Assembly: GCF_021869535.1 (NCBI RefSeq)
Contig: NW_026262690.1
Span: forward strand, 112,282,001-112,346,000
Direction: 5' to 3'
Origin: Mytilus californianus
Taxonomy: Eukaryota
DNA length: 64,000 nt
Part shown: positions 6,480 to 28,607 of the stretch, one piece after another
Numbering within the stretch: position 1 is the stretch's first letter
How the letters are laid out: each line of letters opens with the position of its first letter
The notes under the pieces: model-generated
What the model was told of the DNA's origin: nothing
Databases searched by the model: none
Seen by the model: only the letters and a program-made list of their open reading frames with translations
Translations under genes and position numbers: made by a program

Positions 6480-6950
6480 AAATCTGTCTGGACAGAGCCC
6501 TATCATATTAAGTCCCAAAGAACTTTTTTAGGGAGAATGATTTACAAGAATGGTACAGATATTTTTGGTTGTTTGCGCTAAGTTGTTTTAGAAGATCAGA
6601 AATATATTAATAAAAACAAATGATTGAAAAAAGAGAAAATAATTCAAGCAGAAAAAATAGCATCTACTGTATCAGCAAAAAGTAGAAAAAACAAGCTAGA
6701 ACAAGTCTAGAAGACGCTGTAAAAATCTTAAAAAACGTTATGTTCTCAGATAAAATCAAGATGTACGATCTTCCCGACATTGACAATTTTAAATGCAAAG
6801 ATAAAATCTTGAAAATCCGCCCTATATTGTGGAATTTTCTTTTCAGAATTGGTTCCACTGATAACGAAGAGAAAGTACTTCAGAAGTCAGAATGTACTTG
6901 GAATTCACATTATTCTGAACATCCTTTCAATATTTTCAGAATGATGTCAC
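6480..6950 (+). mobile_element. Left part of unit 1 of the decayed FEN1/XPG-motif element, interrupted by the Gypsy insertion
   Basis: Homologous to 21354-21570 and 21687-22030. The sequence resumes at 17535 after the TSD. Confidence 0.85.
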
Positions 6951-7195
6951 TGATGTATATTTAAGCGTACTTACCAATATTGCTGTGATAGTCAGGCTCG
7001 AGGTTCAGGTTTAAGTGGAAACACTAACTAATCTTATTATTGCACTCTGATTCTCTCTTGGCACTTGTCTGCTACTTGTCAATCACACGAGGTAGATCCA
7101 TCCGCACACACACACTTCTAGTCTATTCTCGTCCCTGGTTCTCTCTATGTCCGTCCTGGTCATGTCATACCGTAAGAGTTACCTAACTTACTACA
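6951..7195 (-). repeat. 3' LTR (245 bp)
   Basis: Differs from 17288-17534 by about 2 substitutions plus a small change at a CA microsatellite. On the minus strand it starts TGTAG and ends CATCA. Confidence 0.97.
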
Positions 7196-7209
7196 CCCTC
7201 CCCCCTTTT
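7196..7209 (-). promoter_or_regulatory. Polypurine tract
   Basis: AAAAGGGGGGAGGG immediately before the TG of the 3' LTR. Confidence 0.92.
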
Positions 7210-7863
7210 AAAAGACGAAGGGACGCCCCTGTAGCGTTTTTCTTTTTAAAACAGAATTCCTATATGAACACTATGAGCACTAGAGCTTTCTCCTAGAAAT
7301 AAACTTATTCTTCTATTTATCGCATTAAACTGAAACGGATAAAAAAAAATTGCAACACAAAGAAATTTATTTTCCCCATGCCAAATACCTAACATTTCTG
7401 CATTTCAACGTTATTCTTAACAAAAACATATATACATTTCGTCCTTTGCTCATTTCGCACTGAGCATGGATTAATTAGCGTTAACTTTGTCAGCTGTGAA
7501 AACGGGGGGCCCGTGTAAACGGGTACATTGCACAAACTAACTTCACTTAACGAATACGATTCACTTTCCATCACTGTACACATTAAAAATTCTGTCAATC
7601 ACTGAATATCCATTAAGTTGCTTGATTGTCCATAAACTCAATATTTCATAAACATCACATTTCACATACTATAACACGGTCTCAAGGCAAATAAAAATAA
7701 TTCCCCTCCTCACATTGTATTGTCCTATACATGTGAACTATTTACATATAATCACTATTGGTTTCCGCTCGGACTGTTCACTTTTACTATATCTGTTTAG
7801 TCCACTGAATATTACACAAACAGGATAATCCAATTAACATATTTACAAATTATATTCATACAG

Positions 7864-9866
7864 CTATTTAAAAATTTCCATAGCATTGCCTAAGGTTGCT
7901 GATGCTATTGTCTGGAGGTCAACATACCTCAGTGTTGCTAATTTCTCAACCACTTCTCCAACATATATCGGGGTGTTTATTCGTATTCCCCTCGGTGGCA
8001 TGTACGGTGCATCAGTTTCTGCCAGTAGTCTGTTGACAGGGATGTAACGAAGAGCCTGAATCTGTTGTTGGTTGAATTTTTGTTATGAGGTGTGTAAATC
8101 CAAAACATGTGTTTCTAAAATTAGAAAGCCATGAAGTTATTGTCTCTTTATCGCTCGTTAAACAGTGTAATATAAAAATTTGATCCGGATGACAACGGTG
8201 TTTAAAAATTTGTAAAGCTTTGAAATACAGGTTTTTCGAATATACATCTTCTCTATTGCTTCTAATATGTAAAATAAGTGGAATGTTGGTTTAATCCATT
8301 CGGTTATTTCTTTTAAAAATTGTTCTTGTCTATCTAAATTTGCCCTGCCAGGATTCATGCTGCTGTCCAGCCCCACCTCACCTACTGCCGAAACACGCGA
8401 GTAGGTCACATATTCATAAAATCTACCTACAGCCTGTGGTGATGCTTCATATATTTTCTTGGGGTGAAGTCCAATAGCCACTTTCCATTTTGAATCAAAC
8501 GGAACTGTCTCCGGATATGTTTCTGGGTCACAAAATATTAAAAGGCCACCCTTTATATATACTGGCACTACTGGTGGTCTCTCCATTTGCTCTCCAAGCC
8601 AACGCTCTATGGTAATAGCGGTCGGATTACCAGATATTCTTGTACTGGCACGAGTCAAAAACATCAAGCACACTCCTCTTCTGTACCTGTGGTTCACTGG
8701 AGTGCTCCTGTTTAGACCTTTTAACAGGGATTACTCTTTTACGTACCACTATTCTTTTGTCGGACTCTACCAGTGTACCCTCTACTGTCGGTGGTTCTAT
8801 TTCATTCGTTTCTTCATCCATGTCAACACTCAATTCCTCTCTCATGGCAAGCACTCGAGCAATGAGTGAGTATGTCTTGGCATATTCCAGTGGCGATTTT
8901 TCCAAGTTGTCGGTATTAGTCATGAAATCCAACCCAAAACACATATACGTTGATAGTTGTTCATTCAGCAAATACTGACTGAACAAAACCTGGTATCTCC
9001 AATGAACTAATACACAAGGAGACACTATAGGCAGAAGAGTATACCTGTCTGGTTTGCGCCATTTTAGCTCCTCACAAAGCCCTTCCATCTGGATCCTTGC
9101 ATTAGACAGGATCTCACTTCTTCTAGGTATCTGTCTGGCAATGTTGTTATTTGCCCATCTTATAAGCTCAGTCATAGAACTGTGTCCAGTCAGACACTCA
9201 CTTAAATACTGTAGAATATTACCCCTCAGTTGATCTTTCTTGCCTCACTGGTGGCTGTGGATTGTCCCACATGATGCGCGGCAGGTGGATGTGCTGCACA
9301 TGAAACTTGAGTTTTCTCCCCACAAAATCGCACCTCTAAAATGGACATGGTGAGTTACGAGGATCATCCTTCTTTTCTTCAACTTGTTGTAAATGCAAAC
9401 TACCTTCTGATATTTCTTCATATACCGAGTTGTTATTGTCATTCCTCGAGCTGTCATCCCAGTCGCTATCACTCTCAATCGCCTCCAGCTTGAATGCTCT
9501 TCTTACTTCCATATTCTCTGTCATCTTTGGAAACCAACGAGGTTCTGTTGTTTCAGATTCTAATGACTCAATATTCTCACAATGAGACAGTACATTTCTA
9601 ATATTGGTCAAGTCTTCCTTAACAATGCATGTACGCTCCTTTTGTGTGATCTGTTCGTACGTCCATTTTGGTAATTTAGATGGTAAATCTGACTTGGGAA
9701 TCTGTTCCTTCACCACAATGTCCCCAGTGGTTTCATCATAGCCAATATGAGGATTATCCTCAAACTCGTCCATATCCGCCACAGAATCTGTCCCGATGCT
9801 CTCTGCATCTAATAATGTGTCTTCTGAACTTGAAATGTCCTCAAAAAGCAATTTCCGCCCTATCAC
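7864..9866 (-). pseudogene. TatD: Accessory ORF3: acidic N-terminus, C2H2-like segment and C-terminal TatD-family nuclease domain; disrupted by one stop and about 4 frameshifts
   Basis: Joining frames gives VAIGLHP, AVGEVGLD, IPLILHIR, ILHCLTS, IPVNRLLAETDAPY, NTPIYVGEVVEKLATLR and ATLGNAMEIFK-stop (7864). This is the TatD motif series in the correct order. Confidence 0.9.
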
Positions 9867-9927
9867 TGTCCATTCTGACCAACCACGAGTGCTCTAAAAG
9901 ACCGTCCACACGGTAAAGCACTAATAC

Positions 9928-10040
9928 ACTATGAAGTTATATATATACACGAAACGGAAAATTAAACTCGCAAAACCGCACAAACACTATTCAGTTATAT
10001 ATATACACAATACGCAAAATTAAACTCGCAAAACCGCACC
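9928..10040. repeat. Two ~58-bp direct repeats between integrase and ORF3
   Basis: 'cactat..agttatatatatacac..aaaattaaactcgcaaaaccgcac' occurs twice. Confidence 0.85.
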
Positions 10041-10151
10041 AATATGTACACTAAATGTCAATTATATGTCTATGTCTACAAAGTCAAAACTGCATAAATC
10101 CTGAAACATAAAGAAAACACTCATTATAACACATATTTTTGCCTATATACA

Positions 10152-10167
10152 CTTTCCCCCTTTTTTT
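10152..10167 (-). promoter_or_regulatory. Internal PPT-like tract
   Basis: AAAAAAAGGGGGAAAG followed by TGTA, 8 nt after the integrase stop. It mimics the terminal PPT/LTR junction. Confidence 0.6.
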
Positions 10168-10174
10168 CGGTATA

Positions 10175-11731
10175 TTACACGTTGTTCGGAGTTTGACATT
10201 TCGGACAGTGATACGTCGCGAAAGTCTCGGCTAATTCCGGAGTCACATTTACGCATGTCCCATGATACCATTCATCGCACATATCGCATTGAATCATGAA
10301 CACTCCTTGATCACCTTTCCTACACATGCAATACATATCTCCCATATCCGGTAATATATTCTCACCATCCTTTAACTGATTTTGAACTCTCTTTAGCCAG
10401 GCTGGAATATTACGATCATTACACTTTTTTATTCGGTCGTGATTTATCACGAATACTGTCTTTTCTAGTTTAACTTTATATACATACGATGTTATTTTCT
10501 CTGCAATTATACCTTGTCCTTTCCACGGTGGGTCTAGTTTTTTACTACGCCCTTTGACCTGTGCCGTGTCTAGTATATATACCAAGTCACCTGGCGCGTA
10601 TTCAGTTTTCCTCATCTTGATATCATAGTCTCTTTTCATGTATTCCTGAGAAGTTCTTAACTTTTCTCGTGCAATTTCATGCGCTTGTCGGATTGTTTCT
10701 ACCAACCGACTCACATATTCCTCTTCGCTCTCATCACTCTCTTGACTTGGCGGTCGAAAAACTAAATCTGTAGGCAAGTTTATTTCCCTCCCCAGCATCA
10801 TTTTATTGGGAGTCTGTCCTGTCATTCTATTTTCTGACGAACGAATGGCACTTGCGAGTTGTGGGAGATATTCGTCCCAATCTTTTTGTGATTTGCTCAC
10901 AAAGCATCTGACTGTGTCCATTAAAGTCCTATTATACCTTTCAACCTGACCATTTGCAGACGGTCTATACGCAGTGGTTCTTGTTTTATGTATTTGAAGA
11001 GTTTTACAAACGGATTTAAACAGGTTACTTTCAAAGTTTCTCCCTTGATCACTATGAATCGAGAATGGACATCCAAATCGTGTAAAAAACTCATTCACTG
11101 CTGCCCTTGCTGTGTCTTCAGCGGTTTGCGATGGTAAAGGTATAATTTCTACCCATTTGGTAAATTGGTCTACCATTACTAATATATTTGTATTTCCCTG
11201 TGTTGTTTCGGGTAATGGTCCTAAAAAATCTATGTGAACTCGCTCCATCGGTACTCCTGAATGATACTGTGTCAAAGGACATCTTGCTTTTCTAGTTGCC
11301 TTTTTGTTCTTGTTACAGACATTACATGATCGGACATAATTTTTAATCGTGTTCCCCATTTTGTACCAATACAATTTCTGTTTGACCCTAGCTGTTGTTC
11401 TGTCAATACCTTGATGTTCAGTTATTGGGAGATCATGGTTTAAACTCAACAACTCCGGTATATATGTCGTTGGTACAACTAATCGCACTTGATTATTTTT
11501 CGACCTATTGAAAAGTACTGACCTATCTAAAAAGAACTGTTCTTTATTCACTAAGTACTTCTTTGCTGCCGGTCCTGCAATATATACTTTGTTATCCGGT
11601 GGCTCCTCGTTCCTCTGTAACCAGTGCAATATCAACTGCAAATCAGGATCCTTGGCTTGTTCAGATGACAACTGGTCAGTTGTATACTGAATTCCAAATT
11701 CACTCTCTTCATTTACAGATGCAGATTTCAC
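10175..11731 (-). CDS. pol: Gypsy integrase with C-terminal PHD finger (pol 3' part, separated by a 1-nt frameshift)
   Basis: HHCC (HDLPITEHQG..CNVC), DDE (VHIDFLGP, HSDQGRNFES, NGQVERYN), GPY/F-like PPWKGQG, then C4HC3 YCMC..CDMCDEWYHGTC..HCPKC. Confidence 0.95.
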   Translation of the reverse strand: MKSASVNEESEFGIQYTTDQLSSEQAKDPDLQLILHWLQRNEEPPDNKVYIAGPAAKKYLVNKEQFFLDRSVLFNRSKNNQVRLVVPTTYIPELLSLNHDLPITEHQGIDRTTARVKQKLYWYKMGNTIKNYVRSCNVCNKNKKATRKARCPLTQYHSGVPMERVHIDFLGPLPETTQGNTNILVMVDQFTKWVEIIPLPSQTAEDTARAAVNEFFTRFGCPFSIHSDQGRNFESNLFKSVCKTLQIHKTRTTAYRPSANGQVERYNRTLMDTVRCFVSKSQKDWDEYLPQLASAIRSSENRMTGQTPNKMMLGREINLPTDLVFRPPSQESDESEEEYVSRLVETIRQAHEIAREKLRTSQEYMKRDYDIKMRKTEYAPGDLVYILDTAQVKGRSKKLDPPWKGQGIIAEKITSYVYKVKLEKTVFVINHDRIKKCNDRNIPAWLKRVQNQLKDGENILPDMGDMYCMCRKGDQGVFMIQCDMCDEWYHGTCVNVTPELAETFATYHCPKCQTPNNV

Positions 11732-14709
11732 TACACTCTATCCACGGATACATTTGATCCATTGCACTCGACAGCTACTTTTACTGCTGGCGCTACAGCT
11801 TCCTGTGTTCGAACAGAGCAACCACTGGAGTCGTTTTTTACTTCTGAACTATTTACCTTATTTGGGACCGCAGCTAACGGTATCACATTATCAATTGTCA
11901 TGAAATCCTTCCAACTCTCATGAACCCTAACACAATACTTACATCCACCACATGGTAAAGATTCTGGATTCACCAAAATCGACATCTCAGGGCAAGGTTT
12001 TACAACATTGAGTCGAGACAAAGCATCCGCGTTAACGTGTTGTCTTCCTGGGCGATGTTGGATTTTCATATGATATTGGCTTAAAACTTTAAGCCAACGC
12101 GCTAGTTGCCCTTGTGGCTCTTTAAAACTGATTAGCCACTGTAAACTACTGTGATCTGATCTAACAATGAATTCACGACTTAACAAATAGTGTCTGAAAT
12201 GTTGTGTGAATCTTACTACTGCTAACAATTCTTTTCGTGTTGTGCAATATCTACGCTGTGCAGGTGACAATGTGAAGCTTCCATAGGCAATAACCCGTTC
12301 AATACCATCTTGCACTTGCAATAACTCAGCTCCTATGGCCATGTCAGAGGCATCAGTATTCAAAATGAACTTGTCAGTTGAGTTTGGTAACGTTAACAGT
12401 GGTGTGGTTTGTAACGCACTTTTCAACGCGTCATACGCCTCTTGTTGATTTTTCTCCCATCTAAACGGTTTTTTCCCTGTTATCTCTGTCAATGGTTTGG
12501 CCATTTTGGAGTACCCTTTGATAAAATTCCGATGGTAATTGACAAAACCTAGAAACTGCTCTTCCGTGTTACTCGGTTTTTTCCAATTTTTTATCACTTG
12601 CACATACTCTTCACCAATTGCCATTCCTTGTTGGTTTACTGTTCTACCTAAAAGACTTACTTCTCTTTTGCACAAATCACATTTTCGTGGTTTTAACTTT
12701 ATTCCGTATTCACGGAAGCGTTCAAACACAGCTCTTAAATTTTCGATGTGATCATTGAAGTTTCTCTCCATGACAAGAATATCGTCCAAAAAACACAGTA
12801 CAATTTGCCAAGTAAGACCCCGCAATACTAAGTCCATAGCACGTGCAAACGTGAATGGAGCATTGCATAGCCCGAAACTCATACGCGTGAACTGAAACAG
12901 CCCGTATTGTGTTATGAAAGCGGTTTTAGGTTGATCTTCCTTTGCCACATTCACCTGCCAATACGCGCTATTTGCGTCCAATTTTGAAAACAACTCATTT
13001 CCGGCGAGTGTATCGAGACATTCCTCTATCAAGGGTAGCGGATACACTTCTTTTTTCGTTACGGAGTTGAGTTTCCTATAATCAATCGCGTATCGAACCT
13101 TACCATCTGATTTTCTTATCAAAACTGGAGCCGACGCCCACTCTGATACACTTGGCTCAATCACGCCCGATTTTAACATTTTGGATAATTGCTGTTTTTC
13201 TTCTTCAACAAACTGCAATGGTGTTCTTCGAATTCGTTGTTTGATAGGTTGTGCTTGTCCCGTGTCGATACCATGTTCTACTCCTCTGAATTTACCTATG
13301 TCAAATTCATCCTTTGAAAATATGTCGGTGTATTCTGACAAAAGCGCCTCTAACTGCTGTCTTTCGTCTTCGGATAAATTCACACTTGAGCTTTCCAATA
13401 ATTGTCTCAATGGAGTAGATAATTCCATCTGTATTCCATCCGTTACTTCTGTTATTTGATTCATCGACACACCGGGTTCAATTTCACTGACCACTTCCGC
13501 CTTGGCTATCACAGAATTTCTCTTAAGTGTATAGTATCTATCACTTGCGTTAACTAAACAAATACTTGGTTGATCCTGATATTTATACAGACATCTTAGA
13601 ATTAAAATTGGCAACTTCTCATTACAAGGTTCAATAATGTAATTATCCAGTTTGTTTTCTAATTTAGCATTACTATGCATAACTGAATGAGGTGGGACGA
13701 CAGTCCTCTTTTTGATTACAACTTTTGATACAACAGGAATACTTTGTTTTGGTCCAGGGGACATTTCTAAAATTTCTCCTATATTGAAAGTGAGCTTTTC
13801 AAGGTCAACAGTCACACCATACGCCACCATAAAGTTTAAGCCCAGTAACATCTCATCTTCAATTGGGGCCACATACACATCTGTTTCATAAAGTTTTGTA
13901 CCAATCCTCAAGCTAACTGGACCCACTACAAAGGTCTTCATTTTCATGCCCCGGCCGGCAGCATGCATAACCGTCTCTCTCAAAGTCGTTGGTTTCTTCT
14001 TGAGCGATTCAAACACTTTATCTGAAATAATAGTGACTTCCGCAGCTGTGTCTACAGCTGCTACCAACGGTGTATCTCCTAATTCTAAGCTCAGTCTCAA
14101 AAGAGACGAGTTACCTAGTAACTGCATGGTAGTGAACGTCCTCTCAGAACCATCAGTAACTGTCTTTTCTACATTGAAATGTCCCACGGGGTTTTCTATG
14201 GTTAGTTCTGTTGCTGGTTGGACCGTGGTTAACGGTATTTTCACCATAGGTCTTTTGTTATCTACCCCTGAGTCTAATTCCTTCTTATCCTGGATAGACA
14301 ACGACACCTTGTCGAACCCCTCTTCCTTTAATAACTTAGCCTTACCTGCACTTTTCGGCTGTATTTGATCTTTTTCCTGTGTATCCTGCTCCTTAATACT
14401 ATTTTCCGTACTTTGTTCCTCTGTACTAGTTTTTTCCATATAATTGCCAACTTTATTTTCAAAATTCTTATTCTCACTTGCGTCACACACATTTTTTCCA
14501 CACACTGTTGTATCGGTGTCAACATTGTTAAATGTTGTTTGGTTTGCTGAAACATCTTTATTTAATTTATCACTCTGAACATCGCTAAATGTTTTTCCTG
14601 TGTCAACGTCGTTAAATGTTGTTTTGTTTAAATTAGCATTTTTATTTTGGCGATTTTTAACAGTGCGGGACGGACCAACGCCTATTTGACCGACCCTTCT
14701 GCGTTTAAA
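11731..14709 (-). CDS. pol: Gypsy Pol: aspartic protease, reverse transcriptase, RNase H
   Basis: AAVDTAAEVTII; IDYRKLN, YPLPLI, FGLCNAP, FLDD; DASDMAIGAELLQ, SDHSSL, NADALSR. The frame stays open upstream of the listed start back to the slippery site. Confidence 0.96.
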   Translation of the reverse strand, partial: FKRRRVGQIGVGPSRTVKNRQNKNANLNKTTFNDVDTGKTFSDVQSDKLNKDVSANQTTFNNVDTDTTVCGKNVCDASENKNFENKVGNYMEKTSTEEQSTENSIKEQDTQEKDQIQPKSAGKAKLLKEEGFDKVSLSIQDKKELDSGVDNKRPMVKIPLTTVQPATELTIENPVGHFNVEKTVTDGSERTFTTMQLLGNSSLLRLSLELGDTPLVAAVDTAAEVTIISDKVFESLKKKPTTLRETVMHAAGRGMKMKTFVVGPVSLRIGTKLYETDVYVAPIEDEMLLGLNFMVAYGVTVDLEKLTFNIGEILEMSPGPKQSIPVVSKVVIKKRTVVPPHSVMHSNAKLENKLDNYIIEPCNEKLPILILRCLYKYQDQPSICLVNASDRYYTLKRNSVIAKAEVVSEIEPGVSMNQITEVTDGIQMELSTPLRQLLESSSVNLSEDERQQLEALLSEYTDIFSKDEFDIGKFRGVEHGIDTGQAQPIKQRIRRTPLQFVEEEKQQLSKMLKSGVIEPSVSEWASAPVLIRKSDGKVRYAIDYRKLNSVTKKEVYPLPLIEECLDTLAGNELFSKLDANSAYWQVNVAKEDQPKTAFITQYGLFQFTRMSFGLCNAPFTFARAMDLVLRGLTWQIVLCFLDDILVMERNFNDHIENLRAVFERFREYGIKLKPRKCDLCKREVSLLGRTVNQQGMAIGEEYVQVIKNWKKPSNTEEQFLGFVNYHRNFIKGYSKMAKPLTEITGKKPFRWEKNQQEAYDALKSALQTTPLLTLPNSTDKFILNTDASDMAIGAELLQVQDGIERVIAYGSFTLSPAQRRYCTTRKELLAVVRFTQHFRHYLLSREFIVRSDHSSLQWLISFKEPQGQLARWLKVLSQYHMKIQHRPGRQHVNADALSRLNVVKPCPEMSILVNPESLPCGGCKYCVRVHESWKDFMTIDNVIPLAAVPNKVNSSEVKNDSSGCSVRTQEAVAPAVKVAVECNGSNVSVDRV

Positions 14710-15785
14710 TCCTGAGTGGGTGTTGCTTTAGCATTAGGACAAAATTTTGCAATATGCCCCAGCTCATGGCAATTGTAGCACTCCCAAGTGGATCTATCTT
14801 TCCTCTGATTTTGTCTTGGTCTGTAATCAGTCCTACCTTGATTAGTATAACCTCTCTTTATTTCGGACATTGTATCTTTCATGGATTCCATTTCATCTTT
14901 CCATTTTCTTTCCATTCCTCTCATTTCGGACTGTACCGCCTGGATGTTTTTATCTACCCGATTTTGCACCTCCCCAATATTTGACTGAATGGTCTTCAAA
15001 TTTCGGTCTACATTTTCAGTCAATCTATCAATGCTGTTCACCAGTTGCTGTTGGGAATCTATTTTGACATTGTTGACCTGGATTACATCCTCACAATTTT
15101 CACTGTTTGGCTCTTGGCTATCCCGTGTAGTACGGGTACGGACATTATTACCAAAAACCGCTTTGTCATTGTACTGTTGCCATTTTATGCGTTCCAGTGC
15201 CTCGTCCACTGACTTTGGTCGAAACGATGCAGCTGTACTTCCTGAATTTTTATCCTCACATCCACGGCACAATTTTGTTATGACCTCACTTGTCATAAAT
15301 TCCTCTGGTAAGTCTCCGAAAGCTTTATCTGCCAAACTGAGTAATCGCTCTGCCCAATCGTCTAAATCTTCTCCTGGTGACTCTCGAGCACTTTGAAACT
15401 GTATGCGGACTGTTTCTGTCAGTTTCCTCAAATTGAATCTTTTCTCCATGCATTTAACAAGTTCAGCATATGAAATGTTCTTATTACGCCTAACGCGCCC
15501 CAGGCAAAATCTTGCTGCATTCCCTGTTACAGCCCAACACAGATGTGCCCGTTTATCTTCTTCGCTTAGTCCTGACATCTCGGCATACATTTCAAACTTC
15601 TCCAAAAACGATACCAAATCATCTCCTGTCTCTGTTCCATCATATTTCAATGATTTCAATGGTGTTGTGGAAGCTTTGTTTGTAACTACTGGTCGTGATG
15701 TATTAGACGGAGTAGTCGGCACCTGTATTTGGCTTGGCTGAGAAAATCCAGCTCCATAACCATATGGCTGGTCCATAGCTGTCAT
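14682..15785 (-). CDS. gag: Gag C-terminal part (capsid-like region, CCHC zinc knuckle)
   Basis: YDGTE..FLEKFEMYAE capsid-like segment and CYNCHELGHIAKFC knuckle (14739-14780). Confidence 0.9.
   Translation of the reverse strand: MTAMDQPYGYGAGFSQPSQIQVPTTPSNTSRPVVTNKASTTPLKSLKYDGTETGDDLVSFLEKFEMYAEMSGLSEEDKRAHLCWAVTGNAARFCLGRVRRNKNISYAELVKCMEKRFNLRKLTETVRIQFQSARESPGEDLDDWAERLLSLADKAFGDLPEEFMTSEVITKLCRGCEDKNSGSTAASFRPKSVDEALERIKWQQYNDKAVFGNNVRTRTTRDSQEPNSENCEDVIQVNNVKIDSQQQLVNSIDRLTENVDRNLKTIQSNIGEVQNRVDKNIQAVQSEMRGMERKWKDEMESMKDTMSEIKRGYTNQGRTDYRPRQNQRKDRSTWECYNCHELGHIAKFCPNAKATPTQDLNAEGSVK
14703..14709 (-). promoter_or_regulatory. Putative -1 ribosomal frameshift heptamer U UUA AAC
   Basis: In gag framing (gaT TTA AAC). 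The pol frame is -1 and overlaps here, and a GC-rich imperfect hairpin begins 6 nt downstream. Confidence 0.8.
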
Positions 15786-16668
15786 GGTTGGAACTGCTGA
15801 ATACTGACTCCTTGGTTGTGTTGTAAATAGGTACAGTAGATATTGGCCTTTGTGTACTCCAGGCTGTATGTGTGCTTGGCATTCTATTCATAGTTGGTCC
15901 TGCATACACATTATTCCTTGCCGGAGCAGAACTAGCTACTATTGGGACCATAAACTTTTGTTGTGGTATAAACTGTGGGTGTGCGACAGGGCGCTTTGTT
16001 GTATGTCCCACTTTAAGTTTTCTCTGTGCAATCTCTATGCTCATCACTTTTGGCTTGAATAACATGGAGTTGTACGGTTTGGTGTCTTGCGCACTCACTT
16101 GAATATTTTCTACACTTGGGTAACTTGGTCCAGGAGCCACCTGCTCTGTCCTTATTAAACTAGTAGGGATTTCGCCCGTTGTCACGGGTTTGTACACATT
16201 CTCAAATTTAATTTTCTTCTCTTTCAATTCTTGCCCCAGATGCATGGGTGGGTATTGAAAACTAAAGTCAGTTGGAGGCAGCAAGGGCTCACTTTTTGGG
16301 ATTATAGTCTGCTGTTCACTCTGTTGTGTGTCCTCCTCCTCCTCGTCGAACTCATCCTGATCCTCCTCAGAAAAAATAGTGCACTTATCATCAAAATCCT
16401 CCAAATTGTCCTCCAAATTATCCTCAACTTGGTCCACAAATTTATAGCCACTTAACGGTGTATAATCTATCAACTCGTGAATTATATCCATACGGATACG
16501 AGGTATCGTCACTAAATTTTCAGGTGTTATATCACCTTGTTTTCTTAAATCCCATATACGGTCTGCGGTTGTATGACCCACGGACGGTATTGACAACAAG
16601 TCATCATACCCACAAAAATTAATGCACACTTTTTCCATATTAACGTGTTCACCTTCTAAATACGACAT
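15703..16668 (-). CDS. gag: Gag N-terminal part with ComEA-like helix-hairpin-helix, then acidic and Pro-rich linker
   Basis: INFCGYDDLLSIPSVGHTTADRIWDLRKQGDITPENLVTIPRI resembles the ComEA pattern INTASAEEL..LPGIGPKKA..II.YR. Overlaps the next gag frame. Confidence 0.75.
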   Translation of the reverse strand: MSYLEGEHVNMEKVCINFCGYDDLLSIPSVGHTTADRIWDLRKQGDITPENLVTIPRIRMDIIHELIDYTPLSGYKFVDQVEDNLEDNLEDFDDKCTIFSEEDQDEFDEEEEDTQQSEQQTIIPKSEPLLPPTDFSFQYPPMHLGQELKEKKIKFENVYKPVTTGEIPTSLIRTEQVAPGPSYPSVENIQVSAQDTKPYNSMLFKPKVMSIEIAQRKLKVGHTTKRPVAHPQFIPQQKFMVPIVASSAPARNNVYAGPTMNRMPSTHTAWSTQRPISTVPIYNTTKESVFSSSNHDSYGPAIWLWSWIFSAKPNTGADYSV

Positions 16669-16819
16669 TGCGAACTGAATTTATTATCCCAAAAACACAC
16701 TAAAAACTCAACACTTGTTTTATTATGCAATCTTTAATAAAATTCACACAATAGTCCTTCACCTGTTCTTGGGTTTGAAAATCTAACAAATTTCACTCAC
16801 TAAAATTTTCAAAGTAAAA

Positions 16820-16975
16820 AAATTGTTCTCTGAACACTTGTTTAAAAAAATTGTAAATTGTTCTCTGAACACTTGTTTTTTTCAAATTAATAAATTGTTC
16901 ACAACACACACTTGTTTATACCAAAAGAAAAATTTATTTAATTTTTTACTAAATTGTTCTCTGAACACTTGTTTC
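16820..16975. repeat. Four copies of a ~24-bp motif in the Gypsy 5' UTR
   Basis: 'aaattgttctctgaacacttgttt' at about 16820, 16855, 16892 (diverged) and 16951. Confidence 0.85.
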
Positions 16976-17267
16976 TTTTTTCAAATTATGCCTAATATGA
17001 CCGATTTACCGGTAAAATGGCTAAACTGACCGGAATTTGGCGAAAAGTGGTGAAACGTCTCGGAACTTTTTGAAATTTTTCAAAAACTTTTCAAATTTGC
17101 AAAAAACTACTTACAATTCAGTGAAAATATTATTCCCATTCACATTTATCCTTAAAATTTGAATTTCACACCACAAATCCTTTTACACTGTCATAAACGT
17201 GTATTCCCGTTTTCGAACTACTTTTTTTCTGCACTGTCCCTTTGAATCGCTTTTTTCAACACTTAAA

Positions 17268-17285
17268 CCCAGCGAGCAGCCGCCA
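17268..17285 (-). promoter_or_regulatory. Primer-binding site (tRNA unassigned)
   Basis: TGGCGGCTGCTCGCTGGG starts 2 nt (AA) after the CA of the 5' LTR. Confidence 0.8.
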
Positions 17286-17287
17286 TT

Positions 17288-17534
17288 TGATGTATATTTA
17301 AGCTTACTTACCAATATTGCTGTGATAGTCAGGCTCGAGGTTCAGGTTTAAGTGGAAACACTAACTAATCTTATTATTGCACTCTGATTCTCTCTTGGCA
17401 CTTGTCTGCTACTTGTCGATCACACGAGGTAGATCCATCCGCACACACACACAATTCTAGTCTATTCTCGTCCCTGGTTCTCTCTATGTCCGTCCTGGTC
17501 ATGTCATACCGTAAGAGTTACCTAACTTACTACA
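17288..17534 (-). repeat. 5' LTR (247 bp)
   Basis: Near-identical to 6951-7195. Confidence 0.97.
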
Positions 17535-20500
17535 TCACGTATATACATTCTAAGTTGTATGTTCCATTGACAGAGTTCCCAGTGTGTGAAACCATAACAT
17601 TTATTAATCACAGAAATAGCTGATGAGTTTTCTAATTCATCTAGTACATTTCTTTCTTTTAATGCTAGATTAAGGGCTGGTATCGCAAAGAACTTTCTCA
17701 GAAGATATATTACTAATAGATGTAGAGAATAAGAACAAAAACAGAGGTATCTAGTATCAAGTAGTTCCATTGTAGTCTCATTTGATAACACTGACAAACA
17801 CCCGGCTTTCTCTGTAGGATGTGCTGGATAAGATAGAAGTGAGTTCCATGGAACCACCATTCAGACTGTGGTTCCAAAGCCCAGTCAACAAATTGTTATG
17901 TTTGATGACTACCATACTATTTCACATTTTGTTCAGACCGACGTATCTGAAGTTAAAAATACGAGAGACCGTAAACTGGAAAAAGACATTATTCAAAAAC
18001 TTGTGAACCCAGACATGTATGGATTCCCACCAATAAAAAAAAAAATTTCCTAACCGGTCACCCTCAGATTTAAATGAAACACCTGCAGAAATTTCAAAAT
18101 CGGATGAATTTTATACAAATGTAACAAAGTATGGATTTTTCCAAAAAAAAATTTCAAAAAAGAAAATAGTGTTTTACAAGGTATTAAGACTTTTTTTTCT
18201 ATTCCAGTTGAAACCAGATTAGTGGCCATTTTGGATGAAACAGCAGACAGCAAAGAAACATTATTAAAGGTTTTGAATATTTTAAATGATAAATTTCAAG
18301 TTGGTCAGGTGACTAATTACAATGTATGTTGTTGTTGTAGGTGACGGGAAAAGCTACGATCATTTCAACATTTGATCAAACCTAAATCGGAATATGAGAA
18401 GATCATGGACTGGGTAATTGCCTATCCTGGGGATTGGCATATGGGTCATTTTTACAAATGTCGAATTTTGAAATGCAAAATTGAATTAAAGTTACTTATT
18501 CAAACAACCCTCTTAACAACCAAATCAAAACAAACAGTACTTATGGAACAACTTATAAAAAGATACAATCTTGATAATGTCATACAAGAATATATTCAAA
18601 CATTTTTTGATAGGTGGTGCAAAATGTTGGCTCTTCTGTTACCATGTTCAAAAGAAATTTCGGGTTATTTAGAAAAGGTTTCGATAAAATTTTAAGCTTG
18701 GTTTTTATAGCCAATAGAATGGTTTTCGAGAGTAAAAAATTCTATATATTTTCATTCTGTTTAATGATAGATTATTTGTCAATTTTTCATGTTGTACTGG
18801 AAAATATACCTCTAAAAATTGGTTTTCAAAGGTTATAAAAATAACCACCAGTAATGCAAGTCTAAGATAGTAATTCATAGTGTTCTGCATTTTTTTTTCT
18901 CTTTCTAATAAACCCAACATCAAGTAATTCCCTCGCATTTTAGTTTACTTGTGTCTTCTTTTTTTTGGTTACAGGAACGTACGTTAACGATATAACACCA
19001 TATTAAGTTCTATCCTGTTACCCTTTTTGTCTATCCTGTAACCGATAGGAGTATTGCATTTGTATACATATACTAAAAATGCTTTTCCTATATTTGTCGA
19101 TATTTATTTTGATGCCGGATTGAAGCAGCTTGCTACTAAACATCCCAATGGAACTACGTTAAATGTTTTAACTGAGTGTAGCAAATTTGCAATAACTCAT
19201 AGGTTTTTTATATACAAGCTTGGGGAGCAGTTATGAGACATCAAGTGAAATCTTTTTTTTAATATAAATCATGTGAGGCACCTTATGACATCCAAATTTC
19301 AAATTTAATATTTGATATTATTTCAAATATGTCATTTGATGAGAGAGAAGTTGATGTTTGTAAAACTGATGTCTGGGAGAAGGTATGTGAGAAGAAAAAT
19401 GAGATTTTTACTTTTTTACAGATGAGTTATTGGCAGAGTATAAAACTTGGCGTTATGAGAACTCCTCAGTCAACCAAATATTTACTTTTTGACAATGTCA
19501 TACATTTAGATTTTATGGCTTATCTTGGTTTGTTTTATCTATACGTAGTAGAAACTGGTTATTACGTAATGTGTCTTTGTAAAAATGAACTGTCTATTTC
19601 ATGCTTTTGATGGGAAAATACATAACATAACCTTAACTCAGAATTATAGCTTGAAAGGGAAGAATGTTTACATCAGACAAAAGGTAAAATGCCTTATGTT
19701 AAAAATGCAGAAAAAACCGTTTGTGAATATATATCCAATTTACAAACATCATCTCTGTTTGTCATAAACTATAATGAAACATTACATCATATCTTTACTA
19801 GAACTGAGACTGACAACGAACATACAGACAGCTTGACAAATTACAGACAGTATGGCGAGGATGACTTGGCAAATTAAGTAAAATACTTTTAATTAAAAAG
19901 TTGTGAAACAGCAGGAAAGCCTCCCCCAGAAAAAAAAGAAAAAAAAAGAAAAACCTTTTCCCCTATTGAATTAACTCTTCACAAGAAAAAAAACCCCCAA
20001 AAATCAAAGATCAAACTACAGTGATTTCTTGTTTGAGGAAAAGATTGCATTTTCTAAGCATAGTGGTAACGCAGTCAAGGATTTGGACCAGTTTTTACAG
20101 CTTTTTTATCACAGGTACCTAAAGATTCACTTACAAGTAGAACTACTGTCATTAATGATGGTATGTTTATCACCAATACCAGTCCACTTCCCTCACATAT
20201 GACCTTTGGTGATTATGGTGATTTTCTTTTTAATAGATGGATTGTTAATTATTAGATTCAGTACACAGCAAATTAGGTTCATTTACTATTCGATGATCAA
20301 TATAGGAATGGTGTTAGCCCAAAAGACATTAAAAAAACCAGGAGGAATACAGTCATACAGGAACCAGTTGTACATGTACGTACATGTATTTCCTCCGACA
20401 CACCATTGCTATCAAACTCGCGAAATTTTATTGCAGTTCGCCGTCAAAAGCGAATTTTGGTTAATTTTCTGTCTTAATACTTTTTTTCTTTATCATCGAA

Positions 20501-21353
20501 AATTTTCTCTTCTAACCAGTGTTCTTTTGTTACAGCTGGAGGATTTGATGATGACAAAAAAGACAGAGCAGTTTCTGAGAAGGAATATGACGGTTGTTTT
20601 TCATTCGTTTGATGTGTTTGAGCTTTTGATTTTGCCATTTGATAACAGACTTATCGTTTTGAATCTTCCTTGGAGTTCGGTAATTTTGTTATTTTACTTT
20701 TTTCCATATTAAATGGTCAAGTTGAAGATTATGTATTGGCATCTGGTAATCATGGAGAGGCTAAGACAAGAGTATGGTTACATGCAGTAGTTACAACAGC
20801 AGATCAAGTCATAATCTACACCCCCGATACTGATGTTTTTTAAAGGGTTTCCACTTGTACCTAATTTAAATAAAACTGTATAAGTTGAGAGACTCACCTT
20901 ACAACAATTCATTTCTTTCTATGAACAAACTTGTAAAGTGTATTATTCTGAACGATTCACTTTAACAGGGAATTGCGAGTGTTTTGACATGTACTCAGTT
21001 ACTTTTTATCTATAGTGGATGCGATTGTGTGTCATATTTCAGAGGTGGTGGTGAGAAGACCTTTTTTGATGTATTTAGAAAACATGCCTCTTGATTGTAG
21101 GTAACGGAAGCTTTGCAGATGTTCATTAAATCAACACATACAGAGCCAAAATTGAAAATTCATTCCCGATTTCGCAGATCTAAAACGTCATTTTGTGTAG
21201 TCTAAATCACGTGATCAGAAACGTCAAGTGGAGTTCTCCTGTGTCGGTGGCATCCCGGATGATATGGAAATATATTTCAAAATAACATGTGTTAAATCAT
21301 TGTGCATAAGCTGTGTCATTAAGTCATTCTGTTATGTTTGTTAATGGAATGGA
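17535..21353 (+). pseudogene. Unit 1 (right part) of a decayed large-ORF element with FEN1/XPG-like nuclease motifs
   Basis: Broken frames give DNTD..FHGTT, GDGKSY..YPGDWH|ILKN..YFDAGL, IRSRNWLLR..FHAFD, GNHGEAKTRVWLH..PDTDV (20745) and SGCDCVSYFRGGGEKTF (21014). Confidence 0.7.
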
Positions 21354-21686
21354 AATCTGTCTGGGCAGAGCGCTATCATATTATGTCCCAAAGAACTTTT
21401 TTAGGGAGAATGATTTACAGGAATGGTACAGATATTTTTGGTTGTTTGCGCTAAGTTGTTGTAGAATATCAGAAATATATTGATGAAAACAAATGATTGA
21501 AAAAAGAAAACATAATTCAAGCAGAAAAAATAGCATCTACTGTATCAGCAGAAAGTAGAAAAAAAAACCTCTTGTGTCAGTGGCATCCCGGATGATATGG
21601 AAACATATTTCAAAATAACGTGTGTTAAATCATTGTGCATAAGCTGTGTCATTAAGTCATTCTGTTATGTTTGTTAATGGAATGGA
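21354..21686 (+). repeat. ~332-bp local tandem duplication spanning the unit junction
   Basis: 21238-21570 is repeated at 21570-21900. Confidence 0.9.
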
Positions 21687-23255
21687 AATCTGTCTGGGCA
21701 GAGCGCTATCATATTTTGTCCCAAAGAACTTTTTTAGGGAGAATGATTTACAGGAATGGTACAGATATTTTTGGTTGTTTGCGCTTAGTTGTTGTAGAAT
21801 ATCAGAAATATATTGATGAAAACAAATGATTGAAAAAAGAGAACATAATTGAAGCAGAAAAAATAGCATCTACTGTATCAGCAGAAAGTAGAAAAAAAAC
21901 CAAACTAGAGCAAAGTCTAGAAGACGCTGTAAAAATCTTAAAAAGTTATGTTAAAATGTATGTCTCAGATAAAATCAAGATGTACAAACTTCCCGACATT
22001 GACAATTTTAAATGCAAAGATCAAATTTTGACGTCCCACCAATAAAAAAACAAAATAAATTTTCTAACCTGTCACCCTCAGATTTAAATGAAACATCTGC
22101 AGAAATTTCAGAATGGGATGAATTTTATACAAATGTAACAAAGTATGTATTTTTCCAAAAAAAAATTTAAAACAAAATAATGTTTTACAAGGTATTAAGA
22201 CTTTTTTCTCTATTCCAGTTGAAATCACTGATTAGTGGCCATTTTGGATGAAACAGCAGACAACAAAGAAACATCATTAAAGGTTTTGAATATTTTAAAT
22301 GATAAATTTCAAGTTGGTCAGGTGACTCATTACAATATATGTTGTTGTTGGTGTGGGTGAAGGGAAAAGCTACGATCATTTGATCAAACCTAAATCGGAA
22401 TATGAGAAAAACATGGACTGGGTACTTGCCTATCCTGGGGATTGGCATATGGGACATTTTTATAAATGTCGAATTTTGAAATGCAAAATTGAATTAAAGT
22501 TACTAATTAAACCAACCCTCTTAACAACCAAATCAAAACAAACAGTACTTATGGAACAACTTATAAAAAGATACAAGCTTGATAATGTCATACAAGAATA
22601 TATTAAAACATTTTTTGATAGGTGGTGCAATATTTTGTCTCTTCTGTTACCATGTTCAAAAGAAATTTCGGGTTATTTAGAAAAGGTTTCGATAAAATTT
22701 TAAGGTTGTTTTTCATAGCCAATAAAATGGTTTTTGAGAGTAAAACATTCTATATATTTTCATTCTGTTTAATGATAGATTATTTGTCAATTTTCCATGT
22801 TGTACTGGAAATTATACATCTAAAAATCTGTTTTCAAAGGTTATAAAAATAACCACCAGTAATGCACGTCTAAGATAGTAATGCATAATGTTCTGCATTG
22901 TTTTCTCTTTCTAATAAATACAGTCAACATCAAGTAATCCCCTCGCATGTTAGTTTACTTTTGTCTTCTTTTTTTTTGTTTTTGTTACAGGAACGTACGT
23001 TAACGATATAACACCATATTACGTTCTATCCTGTTACCCTTTTGGTCTATCATGTTACCGATAGGAGTATTGCATTTATATATATATATATACTAAAAAT
23101 GCTTTTCCTATATTTGTCGATATTTATTTTGATGCCGGATTGAAGCAGCTTCCTACTAAACATCCCCATGGAGCAACATTAAAAGTTTAACTGAGTGTAG
23201 CAAGTTTGCAATAACTCATGGTTTTTTTTATACAAGCTTGGGGAGCAGTTATGAG

Positions 23256-23329
23256 CACAGGCACTTGTCTCAGAAAAATAATTTTCTATATACCTTAGTG
23301 TAACTTTTTTTCTGAGACAAGTGACTGTG
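23256..23329. mobile_element. 74-bp hAT-type MITE
   Basis: 23-bp TIRs (cacaggcacttgtctcagaaaaa, 1 mismatch) and 8-bp TSD GTTATGAG. The paralogous site in unit 1 (about 19229) is empty. Confidence 0.93.
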
Positions 23330-24105
23330 GTTATGAGACATCAAGTGAAATCTTTTTTTGAATATAAATCATGTAAGGCACCTTATGACATCCAAATTTC
23401 AAATTTAATATTTGATATTATTTCAAATATGTCATTTGATGAAGGAGAAGTTGATGGTTGTAAACTTGATGTCTAGAAGATATGTGAGAAACAATGAGTT
23501 ATTGGAAGAGTATAAAACTTGGCGTTATGAGAACTCCTCAGTCAACCAAACTTTTATTTTTTGGGACAATGTCATACATTTAGATTTTAAGGCTTATCTT
23601 GGTTTTTTTTGTATACGTAGTAGAAACTGGTTATTACGTAATGTGTCTTTGAAAAAAGTTACTTGTCTTTTGATGGGAAAAACTATAAGTGACTCTTCAC
23701 CTACCATCTTGCTGATCTCCACACCTTTCCAGAACCTATTATTAAATATTTTGCAACTGGCTACTTTTCAGTTTCAATTTCAAGTAAACATTTGTATTCT
23801 GTAGAACTGGAGGAAGCACACGAAATGGAAATTAATTTAACGTAAAACAAATATCCTCTTAATTCATTCAGCCAGTCTTCTTTAGGAAATCTAACCTTTC
23901 AATTACCTTACAGAACAAAGACATAACATAACCCTTTAATCAGAATTATAGCTTAAAAGGGAAGAAGGTTTACATCAGATAAAAGGAAAAATGTCTTATG
24001 TTTAAAATGCAGAAAAAAACAGTTTGTGAATATATATCCAATTTACAAACATCATCTCTGTTTGTCATAAACTATAATGAAAAACTACATCATATCTTTA
24101 CTAGA

Positions 24106-24145
24106 GTTGTCTCATTGGCACTCATACCACATCTTCTTATATCTA
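24106..24145 (+). mobile_element. 40-bp R2 terminal copy with TAGA TSD
   Basis: The empty site in unit 1 (19799-19802) has a single TAGA. Confidence 0.85.
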
Positions 24146-28420: not shown

Positions 28421-28607
28421 AAGAAAGGGGCTTGAATATTGCAGATGCTCATGGGTAAGATTTTCATCATCTCCAATCTAACTAACATTAATTGATGGAC
28501 AGGTATTGTTACTCAGGGATGTCTGCCTGTCCTGTTTCTCAATCTTACACTTTCTTAAGAGAAAAGCAAAATTTACATAAAATGGTCACTGCTTGAAGTC
28601 CCATAAT

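Follow-up and report, generated by a model that had tools for sequence, protein, structure and literature searches.

A clade of marine-invertebrate Gypsy retrotransposons combining a helix-hairpin-helix Gag, a PHD-terminated integrase and a TatD-type third ORF

The stretch of Mytilus californianus DNA analysed here (the window, 64,000 nucleotides) contains on its minus strand, at 6951-17534, a 10,584-bp Ty3/Gypsy LTR retrotransposon of Mytilus that belongs to a large and old clade of Gypsy elements from marine invertebrates. The ground plan of this clade comprises an LTR, ORF1 (helix-hairpin-helix (HhH)-capsid-CCHC), ORF2 (PR-RT-RNase H-IN-PHD), ORF3 (Zn-finger/helical-TatD) and a second LTR. 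The window copy is a recent insertion, yet it is already defective. Taken jointly, the recent defective copy, the ground plan of the clade and its standing as a distinct lineage form a reading that is very probably correct. The three-module architecture is described in no publication found within the searchable literature, and PHD, ORF3 and nuclease go unmentioned in PMC6238403.

Structure and decay of the window element

The element is a member of the Ty3/Gypsy group (Metaviridae), as seen from its TG...CA LTRs, target-site duplication, PR-RT-RNase H-IN order, capsid with CCHC knuckle, PBS-like site and polypurine tract. Direct-repeat comparison delimits the 5′ LTR in element sense (17288-17534, 247 nt), which is 99% identical to the 3′ LTR (6951-7195, 245 nt, TG...CA), the pair differing by two substitutions and by 2 nt within a CA run. 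Both LTR ends are flanked by the 4-bp duplication TCAC, read from the flanks at 17535-17538 on the element's 5′ side and, matching it, at 6947-6950 on the 3′ side. Also read from the sequence are the polypurine tract AAAAGGGGGGAGGG (7196-7209), which adjoins the 3′ LTR, and a PBS-like TGG... site, TGGCGGCTGCTCGCTGGG (17268-17285), 2 nt past the 5′ LTR, for which no matching primer tRNA was identified. The window sequence contains no N.

All coding features lie on the minus strand. The N-terminal part of Gag is an ORF at 15703-16668 with a ComEA/EEPD1-type HhH at its extreme N-terminus (16495-16644; HHH_3, residues 9-58), followed by the capsid/nucleocapsid ORF (14682-15785), in which Pfam recognizes a PNMA/Ty3-capsid-like region (15321-15611) and a zf-CCHC knuckle (14733-14780). 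The PR-RT-RNase H ORF (11731-14505) contains, according to Pfam, an aspartyl protease (13828-14088), a reverse transcriptase (RVT_1, 12640-13119) and an RNase H (RT_RNaseH, 12073-12459). The 518-aa integrase ORF (10175-11731) carries the H2C2 zinc domain (Integrase_H2C2, 11300-11476), the rve core (10961-11251), a C-terminal region and, as the final Pol domain six residues ahead of the stop, a PHD finger (PF00628, 10196-10330). A remnant of ORF3, traced by a three-frame read and ORF3 family alignments, occupies 7864-9866 and comprises an acidic N-terminus, a CxxxxC...H....H Zn-finger/helical domain and a TatD barrel, of which a single stretch (8299-8487, PF01026) is scored by Pfam in the window copy. 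The HhH-Gag, PHD-integrase and TatD ORF that the preliminary description had placed on one element are thus found between a single pair of LTRs.

The reading frames are disrupted at several points when compared with the sibling copy C79. The HhH part and Gag stand in separate frames, with a 2-nt length difference near 15817, as do the integrase and RT-RNase H, with a 1-nt length difference at about 11733. ORF3 is interrupted by a stop at 9336-9338, within the Zn-finger motif, and differs from C79 (97% identity) by frame-changing length differences near 9848, 9234, 8652, 8319, 8284 and 8081, of which that near 8652 deletes the HxH motif. With the HxH region and the frame gone, the TatD metal ligands are incomplete in this copy. 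Of the separate TatD nuclease ORF initially proposed, the domain match stands (TatD_DNase in ORF 8697-8158, 33.6 bits against a cut-off of 27, profile positions 55-116 of 253), but the ORF itself is broken here.

In C79, the HhH part and Gag share a single frame, RT-RH-IN-PHD forms a single 964-aa frame, and ORF3 (556 + 154 aa) covers positions 1-100 and 123-253 of the TatD profile with 94 bits; its LTRs are one substitution apart and are flanked by the 4-bp duplication GATG. None of the eight copies fetched of the window element's family is uninterrupted, and transcripts of the window copy are essentially absent from the one RNA data set sampled (10 partial reads).

The three modules

The integrase PHD finger of the preliminary description is confirmed by the C-terminal PF00628 match of the window copy (35.9 bits, cut-off 24) and by the PHD motif that ends Pol in 104 of its 120 best relatives. 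The Cys4-His-Cys3 zinc ligands are invariant in the family alignment, and the solved structures most similar to the finger are those of CFP1 (E 9e-14), PHF2, PHF8, BPTF and Spp1. Positions Y206, M218 and W227 are kept in the alignment and presumably match three of the four classical H3K4me3 cage positions, an assignment that follows the published structures of PHF2, PHF8 and BPTF. The fourth position is missing, and the loop that bears the fourth cage tyrosine in PHF2 and BPTF is shortened; both features are shared with CFP1. The H3K4me3 readers CFP1, PHF2/8 and BPTF come nearest to the finger in similarity.

The HhH is likewise seen on Gag, as had been reported; it lies at the N-terminus and is in frame with Gag in C79. 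Single-sequence scores against HHH_3 are weak, with 18.6 bits (E 0.002) in the window copy and 26.6 and 26.9 bits in the relatives L020 and L024; the relative L018 (28.2 bits) alone exceeds the Pfam cut-off of 27. A profile built from seven Gag N-termini matches EEPD1 (E 1.5e-8) and ComEA (E 1e-7).

Across the family, ORF3 starts with an acidic, disordered stretch, continues with a zinc finger of the pattern C-x4-C-x9-H-x4-H and a helical domain, and closes with a TIM barrel of the TatD (YcfH-like) kind. TatD_DNase is the sole Pfam family matched by ORF3 proteins; the NCBIfam model TIGR00010 gives 143 bits, under its cut-off of 206, and QatD, a defence-system nuclease, is among the NCBIfam matches. 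The best solved match of the C-terminal domain is E. coli YcfH (E 6e-20), and the AlphaFold model shows a TIM barrel with a Foldseek TM of 0.82 to 6l25/2gzx (S. aureus/E. coli TatD/YcfH). The metal ligands HxH, E, H, H and D are present family-wide, and D361, H363, H365, D367, E459, H494, H526 and E575 are invariant in a comparison of 16 sequences sharing 24-48% identity with the reference ORF3. The 170-residue N-domain (AlphaFold pLDDT 91) has no Pfam family, no structural match and no recognisable partner; it is found in 641 clusters (50% identity), with TatD in 56 of the 61 that have room after it. One relative has additionally captured Tpt1/KptA, an end-modifying enzyme. No other TatD-bearing retrotransposon was found within the searchable literature.

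Relatives and lineage

The survey comprised 80 metagenome loci in addition to these relatives and copies. The Pol domain order PR-RT-RNase H-IN is common to all relatives, and the named hosts are Mytilus, Dreissena, Ostrea, Pinctada, Haliotis, Gigantopelta, Elysia and the urchin Lytechinus. All three modules occur in L017, whose three ORFs (602, 1443 and 626 aa) are intact, in L018, L019, L022 and L023, in L020 from Dreissena polymorpha, whose LTRs are identical across the detected 227-nt repeat, and in L024 from Lytechinus pictus. Integrase is followed by PHD in 38 loci of the survey. Where at least 2.5 kb lies downstream of integrase-PHD, ORF3 is present in 22 of 22 loci and its TatD part in 20, and an HhH is found at the Gag N-terminus in 10 of 13 loci with at least 5.4 kb upstream. 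ORF3 is missing from six of the seven PHD-less loci with room downstream, a class that is under-sampled because the PHD motif itself served as one of the two patterns by which the metagenome loci were sought, and most outgroup contigs are too short for ORF3 scoring.

The modules were mapped on an integrase-only tree (IQ-TREE, 45 rows, 470 columns, midpoint root), whose rows are without reference elements of Mag A/B/C, MolGy (Thomas-Bulle 2018) and the GyDB clades. On this tree, ORF3 carriers form a single clade (100/100) in which PHD carriers are a nested clade (99/96), with the PHD-less TatD elements L049, L050 and L053 as its sister (98/88); PHD and ORF3 each change state once and TatD twice. 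L025, from Ostrea, has the PHD and the ORF3 N-domain without TatD and HhH. Because L025, L049, L050 and L053 carry subsets, the modules are not strictly co-inherited, and their co-distribution is strong, not perfect. It is neither sporadic nor restricted to the window copy, and the claim of a distinct lineage holds, given the co-occurrence of the modules in divergent bivalve, gastropod and sea urchin elements and the one well-supported clade of the integrase tree.

Proposed mechanism and alternative explanations

It is marginally favoured that the PHD finger anchors the intasome on nucleosomes bearing H3K4me3, by which integration would be biased to active promoter chromatin, since the finger most resembles CFP1, PHF2/8 and BPTF and keeps the cage-matching positions. 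By analogy, such tethering would parallel the chromodomains of chromoviruses. The prospects are close to even, though slightly below, that the HhH of Gag is a sequence-independent binder of double-stranded DNA and anchors the particle, or the pre-integration complex, to chromatin or to its own cDNA. With similar reserve, ORF3 may be viewed as an active metal-dependent nuclease whose N-domain would bring TatD to nucleic acids of the element for trimming 3′ ends or removing RNA from RNA:DNA hybrids, in replication intermediates or surplus cDNA; activity is proposed because the catalytic residues are invariant over the 16 divergent sequences. Combined, these proposals give a more tentative picture of an undescribed, ancient and species-rich molluscan/echinoderm Gypsy lineage with its own TatD, H3K4me3-aimed integration and an HhH-tethered Gag. 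In this combined picture, ORF3 would be the first retroelement-borne TatD, fused to a new-fold Zn-finger/helical domain, and some members would add a Tpt1 RNA 2′-phosphotransferase, in effect a kit for chromatin reading and end processing.

The union of the three modules could itself be an accident of the locus, produced by insertions nested in one another, by capture of part of a host TatD or PHD gene, or by a chimeric assembly. In the window copy, indeed, no two modules share a reading frame, and TatD is represented by a fragment. However, the modules are all enclosed by a single pair of LTRs with a clean duplication of the target site, and their order and spacing are repeated in same-genome copies of 70-97% identity and in 30 or more independent loci of other species and samples, several with uninterrupted ORFs. 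The HhH-Gag and RT-IN-PHD frames being restored in C79 and all modules being carried by relatives elsewhere, an accident is ruled out, its residual probability being negligible.

Alternatives to the proposed functions carry more weight. A role of the ORF3 nuclease against the host, either by clearing excess cDNA or RNA:DNA hybrids from the cytosol and so escaping innate sensing (TREX1-like) or by attacking host nucleic acids or defence products, would suit a protein that is separate from Pol and sits at the env position of other Gypsy elements. TatD enzymes are general 3′-5′ exonucleases according to NCBIfam names, which include QatD, the Tpt1/KptA capture suggests a theme of nucleic-acid end manipulation, and innate immune receptor repertoires are expanded in bivalves. 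The conserved N-domain without recognisable partner or fold speaks against this role, which is considered rather unlikely. Still less likely is that the PHD finger, instead of targeting integration, serves expression or the evasion of silencing, by keeping copies in H3K4me3 chromatin or recruiting factors to it, or that its ligand is unmodified H3 or a partner other than a histone. Such fingers have varied functions, and their role in other transposons is still unknown (PMC8557442, PMC6673714), and the shortened loop, as in CFP1, is compatible with such uses. Yet the finger occupies the extreme C-terminus of the integrase in those 104 relatives, the position of the chromovirus chromodomain, and every one of the solved structures nearest to it is an H3K4me3 reader. 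Integration targeting remains the preferred role of the PHD.

Comparison with known systems

Chromoviruses have a C-terminal integrase chromodomain that is presumed to tether integration to a particular state of chromatin (Gao et al. 2008, cited by PMC6673714). The likeness is a histone-mark reader attached at the C-terminal end of a Gypsy integrase. Chromoviruses use a chromodomain and H3K9me heterochromatin, whereas the mussel element has a CFP1/PHF2/BPTF-type PHD, predicting the active mark H3K4me3; HhH-Gag and the putative nuclease ORF3 further set the mussel clade apart. Chromovirus identity was rejected, as Pfam gives PF00628 and no chromodomain.

PHD fingers are also accessory domains of REM1 and other Chlamydomonas elements, of CR1-like non-LTR elements and of Rehavkus DNA transposons (PMC6673714, PMC8557442). 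In these transposons of other hosts and classes, the finger is not described as terminal in the integrase of a metazoan Gypsy element, and reports mention neither TatD nor HhH as its partner. A retrotransposon lineage stably bearing a captured chromatin-reading domain is known from the CopiaMBD elements of arthropods (PMC6673714), which differ in being Copia and not Gypsy, in having a methyl-CpG-binding domain in place of a PHD, and in carrying a single module.

A third ORF between pol and the 3′ LTR is found in env-carrying Gypsy elements, the errantiviruses and relatives (PMC13524379). ORF3 shares this position, but is modelled as a soluble two-domain predicted nuclease where those elements have env. 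Errantivirus-like identity was rejected, ORF3 being an N-domain plus TatD barrel and not a membrane fusion glycoprotein. With TatD/YcfH/TATDN nucleases, the C-terminal domain of ORF3 has in common the fold and the complete set of residues for metal binding and catalysis; ORF3 differs from them in being retrotransposon-encoded and fused to a Zn-finger/helical domain without known fold.

Significance

The invariance of the TatD active site across deep divergence indicates that the enzyme matters to the element, and raises the question of whether it processes cDNA and RNA:DNA hybrids or blunts innate sensing. The ORF3 N-domain constitutes a sizeable uncharacterised protein family. In annotations, these ORFs go under ‘uncharacterized protein’, ‘tatD’ or host genes of TATDN2-like type, and the ORFs of the clade contaminate symbiont MAGs, which is relevant for genome annotators.

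Chromatin-reading domains on integrases are the best-understood route by which retroelements choose their landing sites. If the PHD finger of this clade is truly of the H3K4me3-reader type, the clade would be an ‘active chromatin’ counterpart to chromoviruses among metazoan Gypsy elements, and would be relevant to the reshaping of promoters through insertions in bivalve genomes.

Organization of the element and state of its copies

The element at 6951-17534 is carried by the minus strand and is bounded by two direct repeats with TG...CA termini, one of 245 nt (6951-7195) and one of 247 nt (17288-17534). The latter is the 5′ LTR, because every long ORF is on the minus strand. Two substitutions and a 2-nt shift in the length of a CA run distinguish the two LTRs, TCAC stands at both flanks as a 4-bp target-site duplication, and the whole window sequence is free of N. 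A PBS-like sequence, TGGCGGCTGCTCGCTGGG, occupies 17285-17268 on the minus strand, 2 nt past the 5′ LTR, and a polypurine tract on the same strand, AAAAGGGGGGAGGG at 7209-7196, adjoins the 3′ LTR. The genome contains the 15-nt PBS complement eight times, with three or more of these inside element copies, and no primer tRNA was found at the one independent exact-match site examined.

Between these signals, all on the minus strand, Pfam searches detect a series of coding modules. An ORF at 16668-15703 shows a weak, sub-threshold match to HHH_3 (ComEA-type) in its first 58 residues (E 0.002), and the Gag ORF at 15785-14682 combines similarity to the PNMA/Ty3 capsid with a CCHC knuckle. Protease, RT and RNase H share the ORF at 14505-11731, while the integrase ORF at 11731-10175 carries a PHD finger at its end (35.9 bits against a threshold of 24). 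Downstream of the latter lies a TatD nuclease fragment restricted to profile positions 55-116 (33.6 bits, threshold 27). The HhH, PHD and TatD modules of the preliminary description are present where they had been placed. The adjoining region, 17535-29213, is occupied by a putative large-ORF element with FEN1/XPG-like motifs, as read from the sequence.

The window copy is broken, and its closest copy in the same genome (C79, 97% identity) serves as a reference for mapping the damage. Frame-changing length differences separate the HhH part from Gag (at about 15817) and the integrase from RT-RNase H (at about 11733), and six others affect ORF3, the third ORF after Pol (at about 9848, 9234, 8652, 8319, 8284 and 8081), with loss of the HxH motif near 8652. 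A three-frame read of 10400-7196 finds the remaining TatD barrel spread across two frames and a stop codon at 9336-9338, within the Cys/His motif of ORF3. In C79, the HhH part and Gag share a single frame interrupted by one stop, RT-RH-IN-PHD forms a single frame of 964 aa, and ORF3 consists of 556 + 154 aa that match TatD profile positions 1-100 and 123-253. C79 is also defective, as are all eight fetched copies of the family, none of which is uninterrupted; family copies in the same genome show 70-97% identity to the window copy. The searched genome amounts to 1.65 Gb, and broken pieces were analysed one by one. Near-identical LTRs and clean 4-bp duplications in both copies indicate recent insertion of both, and by our estimate the damage load is roughly that expected from LTR divergence since insertion. 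Together, the layouts of the two copies define the family plan as LTR, HhH-Gag, PR-RT-RH-IN-PHD, ORF3(TatD), LTR.

Two other readings of the locus can be weighed against this plan. A nested or chimeric locus, in which the modules would not be parts of one element, is ruled out by C79 and by relatives at other loci. Chromatin readers on integrases are already known in chromoviruses, and a chromovirus reading is ruled out by the Pfam results for the window and C79 copies. As to expression, one raw-read RNA-seq run and three contig-form runs compared with 6951-12950 gave no support, for the tissues sampled, for transcription or for a spliced ORF3 mRNA; the matches consist of 10 reads that fit in part and two short contigs derived from related copies, with no joints.

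The PHD and HhH modules

The closest PHD fingers to the integrase tail are those of CFP1 (E 9e-14), PHF2, PHF8, BPTF and Spp1, all readers of H3K4me3. The zinc ligands do not vary among 14 diverse elements, and Y206, M218 and W227, which align with three positions taken as cage residues in the published structures, are invariant or nearly so. PHF2 and BPTF have a fourth cage residue, a tyrosine, that the element PHD lacks, as does CFP1. The motif forms the end of the protein in 104 of the 120 best Pol relatives and is nearly always located 15 residues or less from the stop. The HhH module scores weakly in single Gag sequences, where HHH_3 matches range from 17 to 28 bits, always at residues ∼3-60. 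A profile of seven Gag N-termini matches the HhH region of human EEPD1 (E 1.5e-8) and ComEA (E 1e-7 and 4e-6).

The ORF3 protein

A word search with a C79 ORF3 piece retrieves full-length relatives of 626-869 aa with 26-49% identity, all containing TatD; ORF3 proteins of the M. californianus genome reach 93% identity to proteins of Mytilus galloprovincialis. Alignments of 10, and later 16, full-length relatives delineate four regions. The first, at the N-terminus, is acidic and variable, the second joins an almost unchanging C-x4-C-x9-H-x4-H motif to a helical region whose Trp-Arg is invariant, the third is a linker and the fourth is the TatD domain. In the latter, D361, H363, H365, D367, E459, H494, H526 and E575 are invariant in both alignments and coincide with the HxH, Glu, His, His and Asp metal-ligand positions of TatD enzymes. 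For the intact ORF3 of L017, AlphaFold predicts a disordered segment (1-141), a confident domain (142-310) and a TIM barrel (354-626), the last superposing on S. aureus and E. coli TatD/YcfH with a TM of 0.82. By sequence, the closest solved protein to the TatD domain is E. coli YcfH (E 6e-20), and NCBIfam assigns the barrel to the TatD subfamily with a score below the cut-off. Third ORFs of Gypsy elements are known as env (PMC13524379), and an env-like ORF3 is ruled out by the alignment and the AlphaFold model.

The Zn-finger/helical N-domain, when modelled on its own, reaches a pLDDT of 91 and a pTM of 0.86. Searches for its fold yielded nothing better than E 2 with Foldseek against the PDB, a top Z of 3.1 with VIA-align against 48,161 chains, and a TM of 0.38 or less in the ESM Atlas; as modelled, the domain is without a convincing structural relative. 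An exhaustive profile search recovers the N-domain in 641 clusters (50% identity), 307 of which score E 1e-10 or better, and TatD follows it in 56 of the 61 cluster representatives with at least 250 residues beyond it. Members with named hosts are annotated as ‘uncharacterized’ and come from Ostrea edulis, Haliotis cracherodii, Mytilus and Dreissena polymorpha. As to where the TatD domain came from, feature searches of the Atlas return generic TatD clusters only (bacteria, fungi, arthropods), and no TATDN2 structure is found among its PDB matches. The legend to the Hox cluster figure of the giant squid genome paper places a ‘TATDN2’ in the Architeuthis cluster, beside the transposon-derived POGK and ZMYM1 (PMC6962438); this might be a retrotransposon ORF3 of the present kind and not a host gene.

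Co-occurrence of the modules and definition of the lineage

Genomic context reveals HhH, PHD and TatD in constant order in L017, whose ORFs are intact, and in L018, L019, L020, L022, L023 and L024. L020 (Dreissena polymorpha) has LTRs identical along a detected repeat of 227 nt, L022 and L023 are tandem or adjacent elements, and L024, with all three modules, is from the sea urchin Lytechinus pictus. In L019, 96-99-nt tandem repeats within the Gag ORF (1731-2655) stretch Gag to 917 aa. Degraded Pol-PHD-ORF3 copies occur in Gigantopelta aegis (L026) and Elysia marginata (L027); HhH was not detected in either, and the upstream DNA of L027 contains an assembly gap.

The survey was extended to 80 more loci from JGI metagenome contigs, scanned with an IN-PHD alignment and scored with HMMs made from natural sequences. 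An integrase followed by a PHD is found in 38 survey loci, a count to be read knowing that the PHD motif itself was one of the two search patterns. Where at least 2.5 kb is available downstream of integrase-PHD, ORF3 is present in 22/22 loci and its TatD part in 20/22; HhH is found in 10 of the 13 whose upstream DNA extends for 5.4 kb or more. One TatD exception is due to a contig end. The other, L025 (Ostrea edulis OX387711.1, 12933-15109), has integrase-PHD followed by a 380-aa ORF3 made of the N-domain alone, lacks TatD over the 7 kb available and HhH in its putative Gag, and is a natural ‘TatD-less’ variant. Among PHD-less loci with downstream room, ORF3 occurs in one of seven (L050 only), most outgroup contigs being too short for module scoring. 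L050 and the intact, complete-looking L049 (9.2 kb) carry a TatD ORF3 and a Pol without PHD; the Gag of L049 has a weak N-terminal HHH_3 match.

The preliminary description had proposed that the modules define a distinct lineage, and mapping them on a midpoint-rooted maximum-likelihood tree, built from the integrase only, bears this out. ORF3 carriers form a single clade (support 100/100), in which PHD carriers are nested as a clade (99/96) with the window copy beside L017. Three PHD-less TatD elements from metagenome contigs (L049, L050 and L053) are the sister group of the PHD clade (98/88), which suggests that ORF3 is older than PHD, or was kept after PHD loss. Along the tree, PHD and ORF3 each change state once and TatD twice. 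Since the modules co-occur across loci and cluster on the tree, they are neither independent or sporadic among relatives nor unique to the window copy. At the level of sequence, these data establish three accessory modules as fixed in one clade and under constraint.

Other observations concern the margins of the survey. In L086, L088, L089 and L099 (contigs WLWD01...), a PHD-like match lies ∼2.5 kb downstream of a distant integrase (26-29% identity) and not at its C-terminus. Clade Pol proteins P0079, P0129, P0160 and P0165 are deposited under bacterial MAGs (Sedimenticola, and Candidatus Thiodiazotropha of lucinid clams) and probably represent host DNA binned with the symbiont.

In the M. californianus genome, the ORF3 profile finds 651 candidate places, and the 65 scored include several uninterrupted frames of 621-698 aa. 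For the IN-PHD profile, 146 candidates were scored out of 2,343. When the coordinates of both lists are paired, ORF3 follows IN-PHD at a distance of a few hundred bases in most of the scored cases. At G000:C165:31696974-31699883, IN-PHD and ORF3 lie within one open frame of 1,814 aa, a possible Pol-ORF3 fusion variant.

Relation to known elements and proposed function

CR1 elements, Rehavkus transposons and Chlamydomonas elements are known to carry PHD fingers as accessory domains (PMC8557442, PMC6673714). A survey of mollusc LTR elements, which used RT/RNase H to define 21 Gypsy clades, makes no mention of PHD, ORF3 or nuclease (PMC6238403). The literature searched does not link TatD or HhH to any LTR retrotransposon, nor does it describe the HhH/PHD/TatD Gypsy architecture; Repbase was outside the search, and earlier cataloguing is possible.

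By analogy with the chromodomains of chromoviruses (PMC6673714), the PHD would tether the intasome to H3K4me3 nucleosomes, while the HhH would let Gag bind DNA or chromatin regardless of sequence. ORF3, as a putative active nuclease, would either process replication intermediates, by 3′-end trimming and removal of RNA from hybrids, or clear surplus cDNA and thereby favour escape from innate sensing. In another member of the clade, L108 (JGI metagenome contig Ga0438279_0000675, 90-6071; protein P0071), a Tpt1/KptA RNA 2′-phosphotransferase (PF01885, 148 bits) is inserted between the integrase and the terminal PHD, and a 613-aa TatD ORF3 directly follows Pol. This insertion, as recognised by domain homology, fits a theme of nucleic-acid end-processing.
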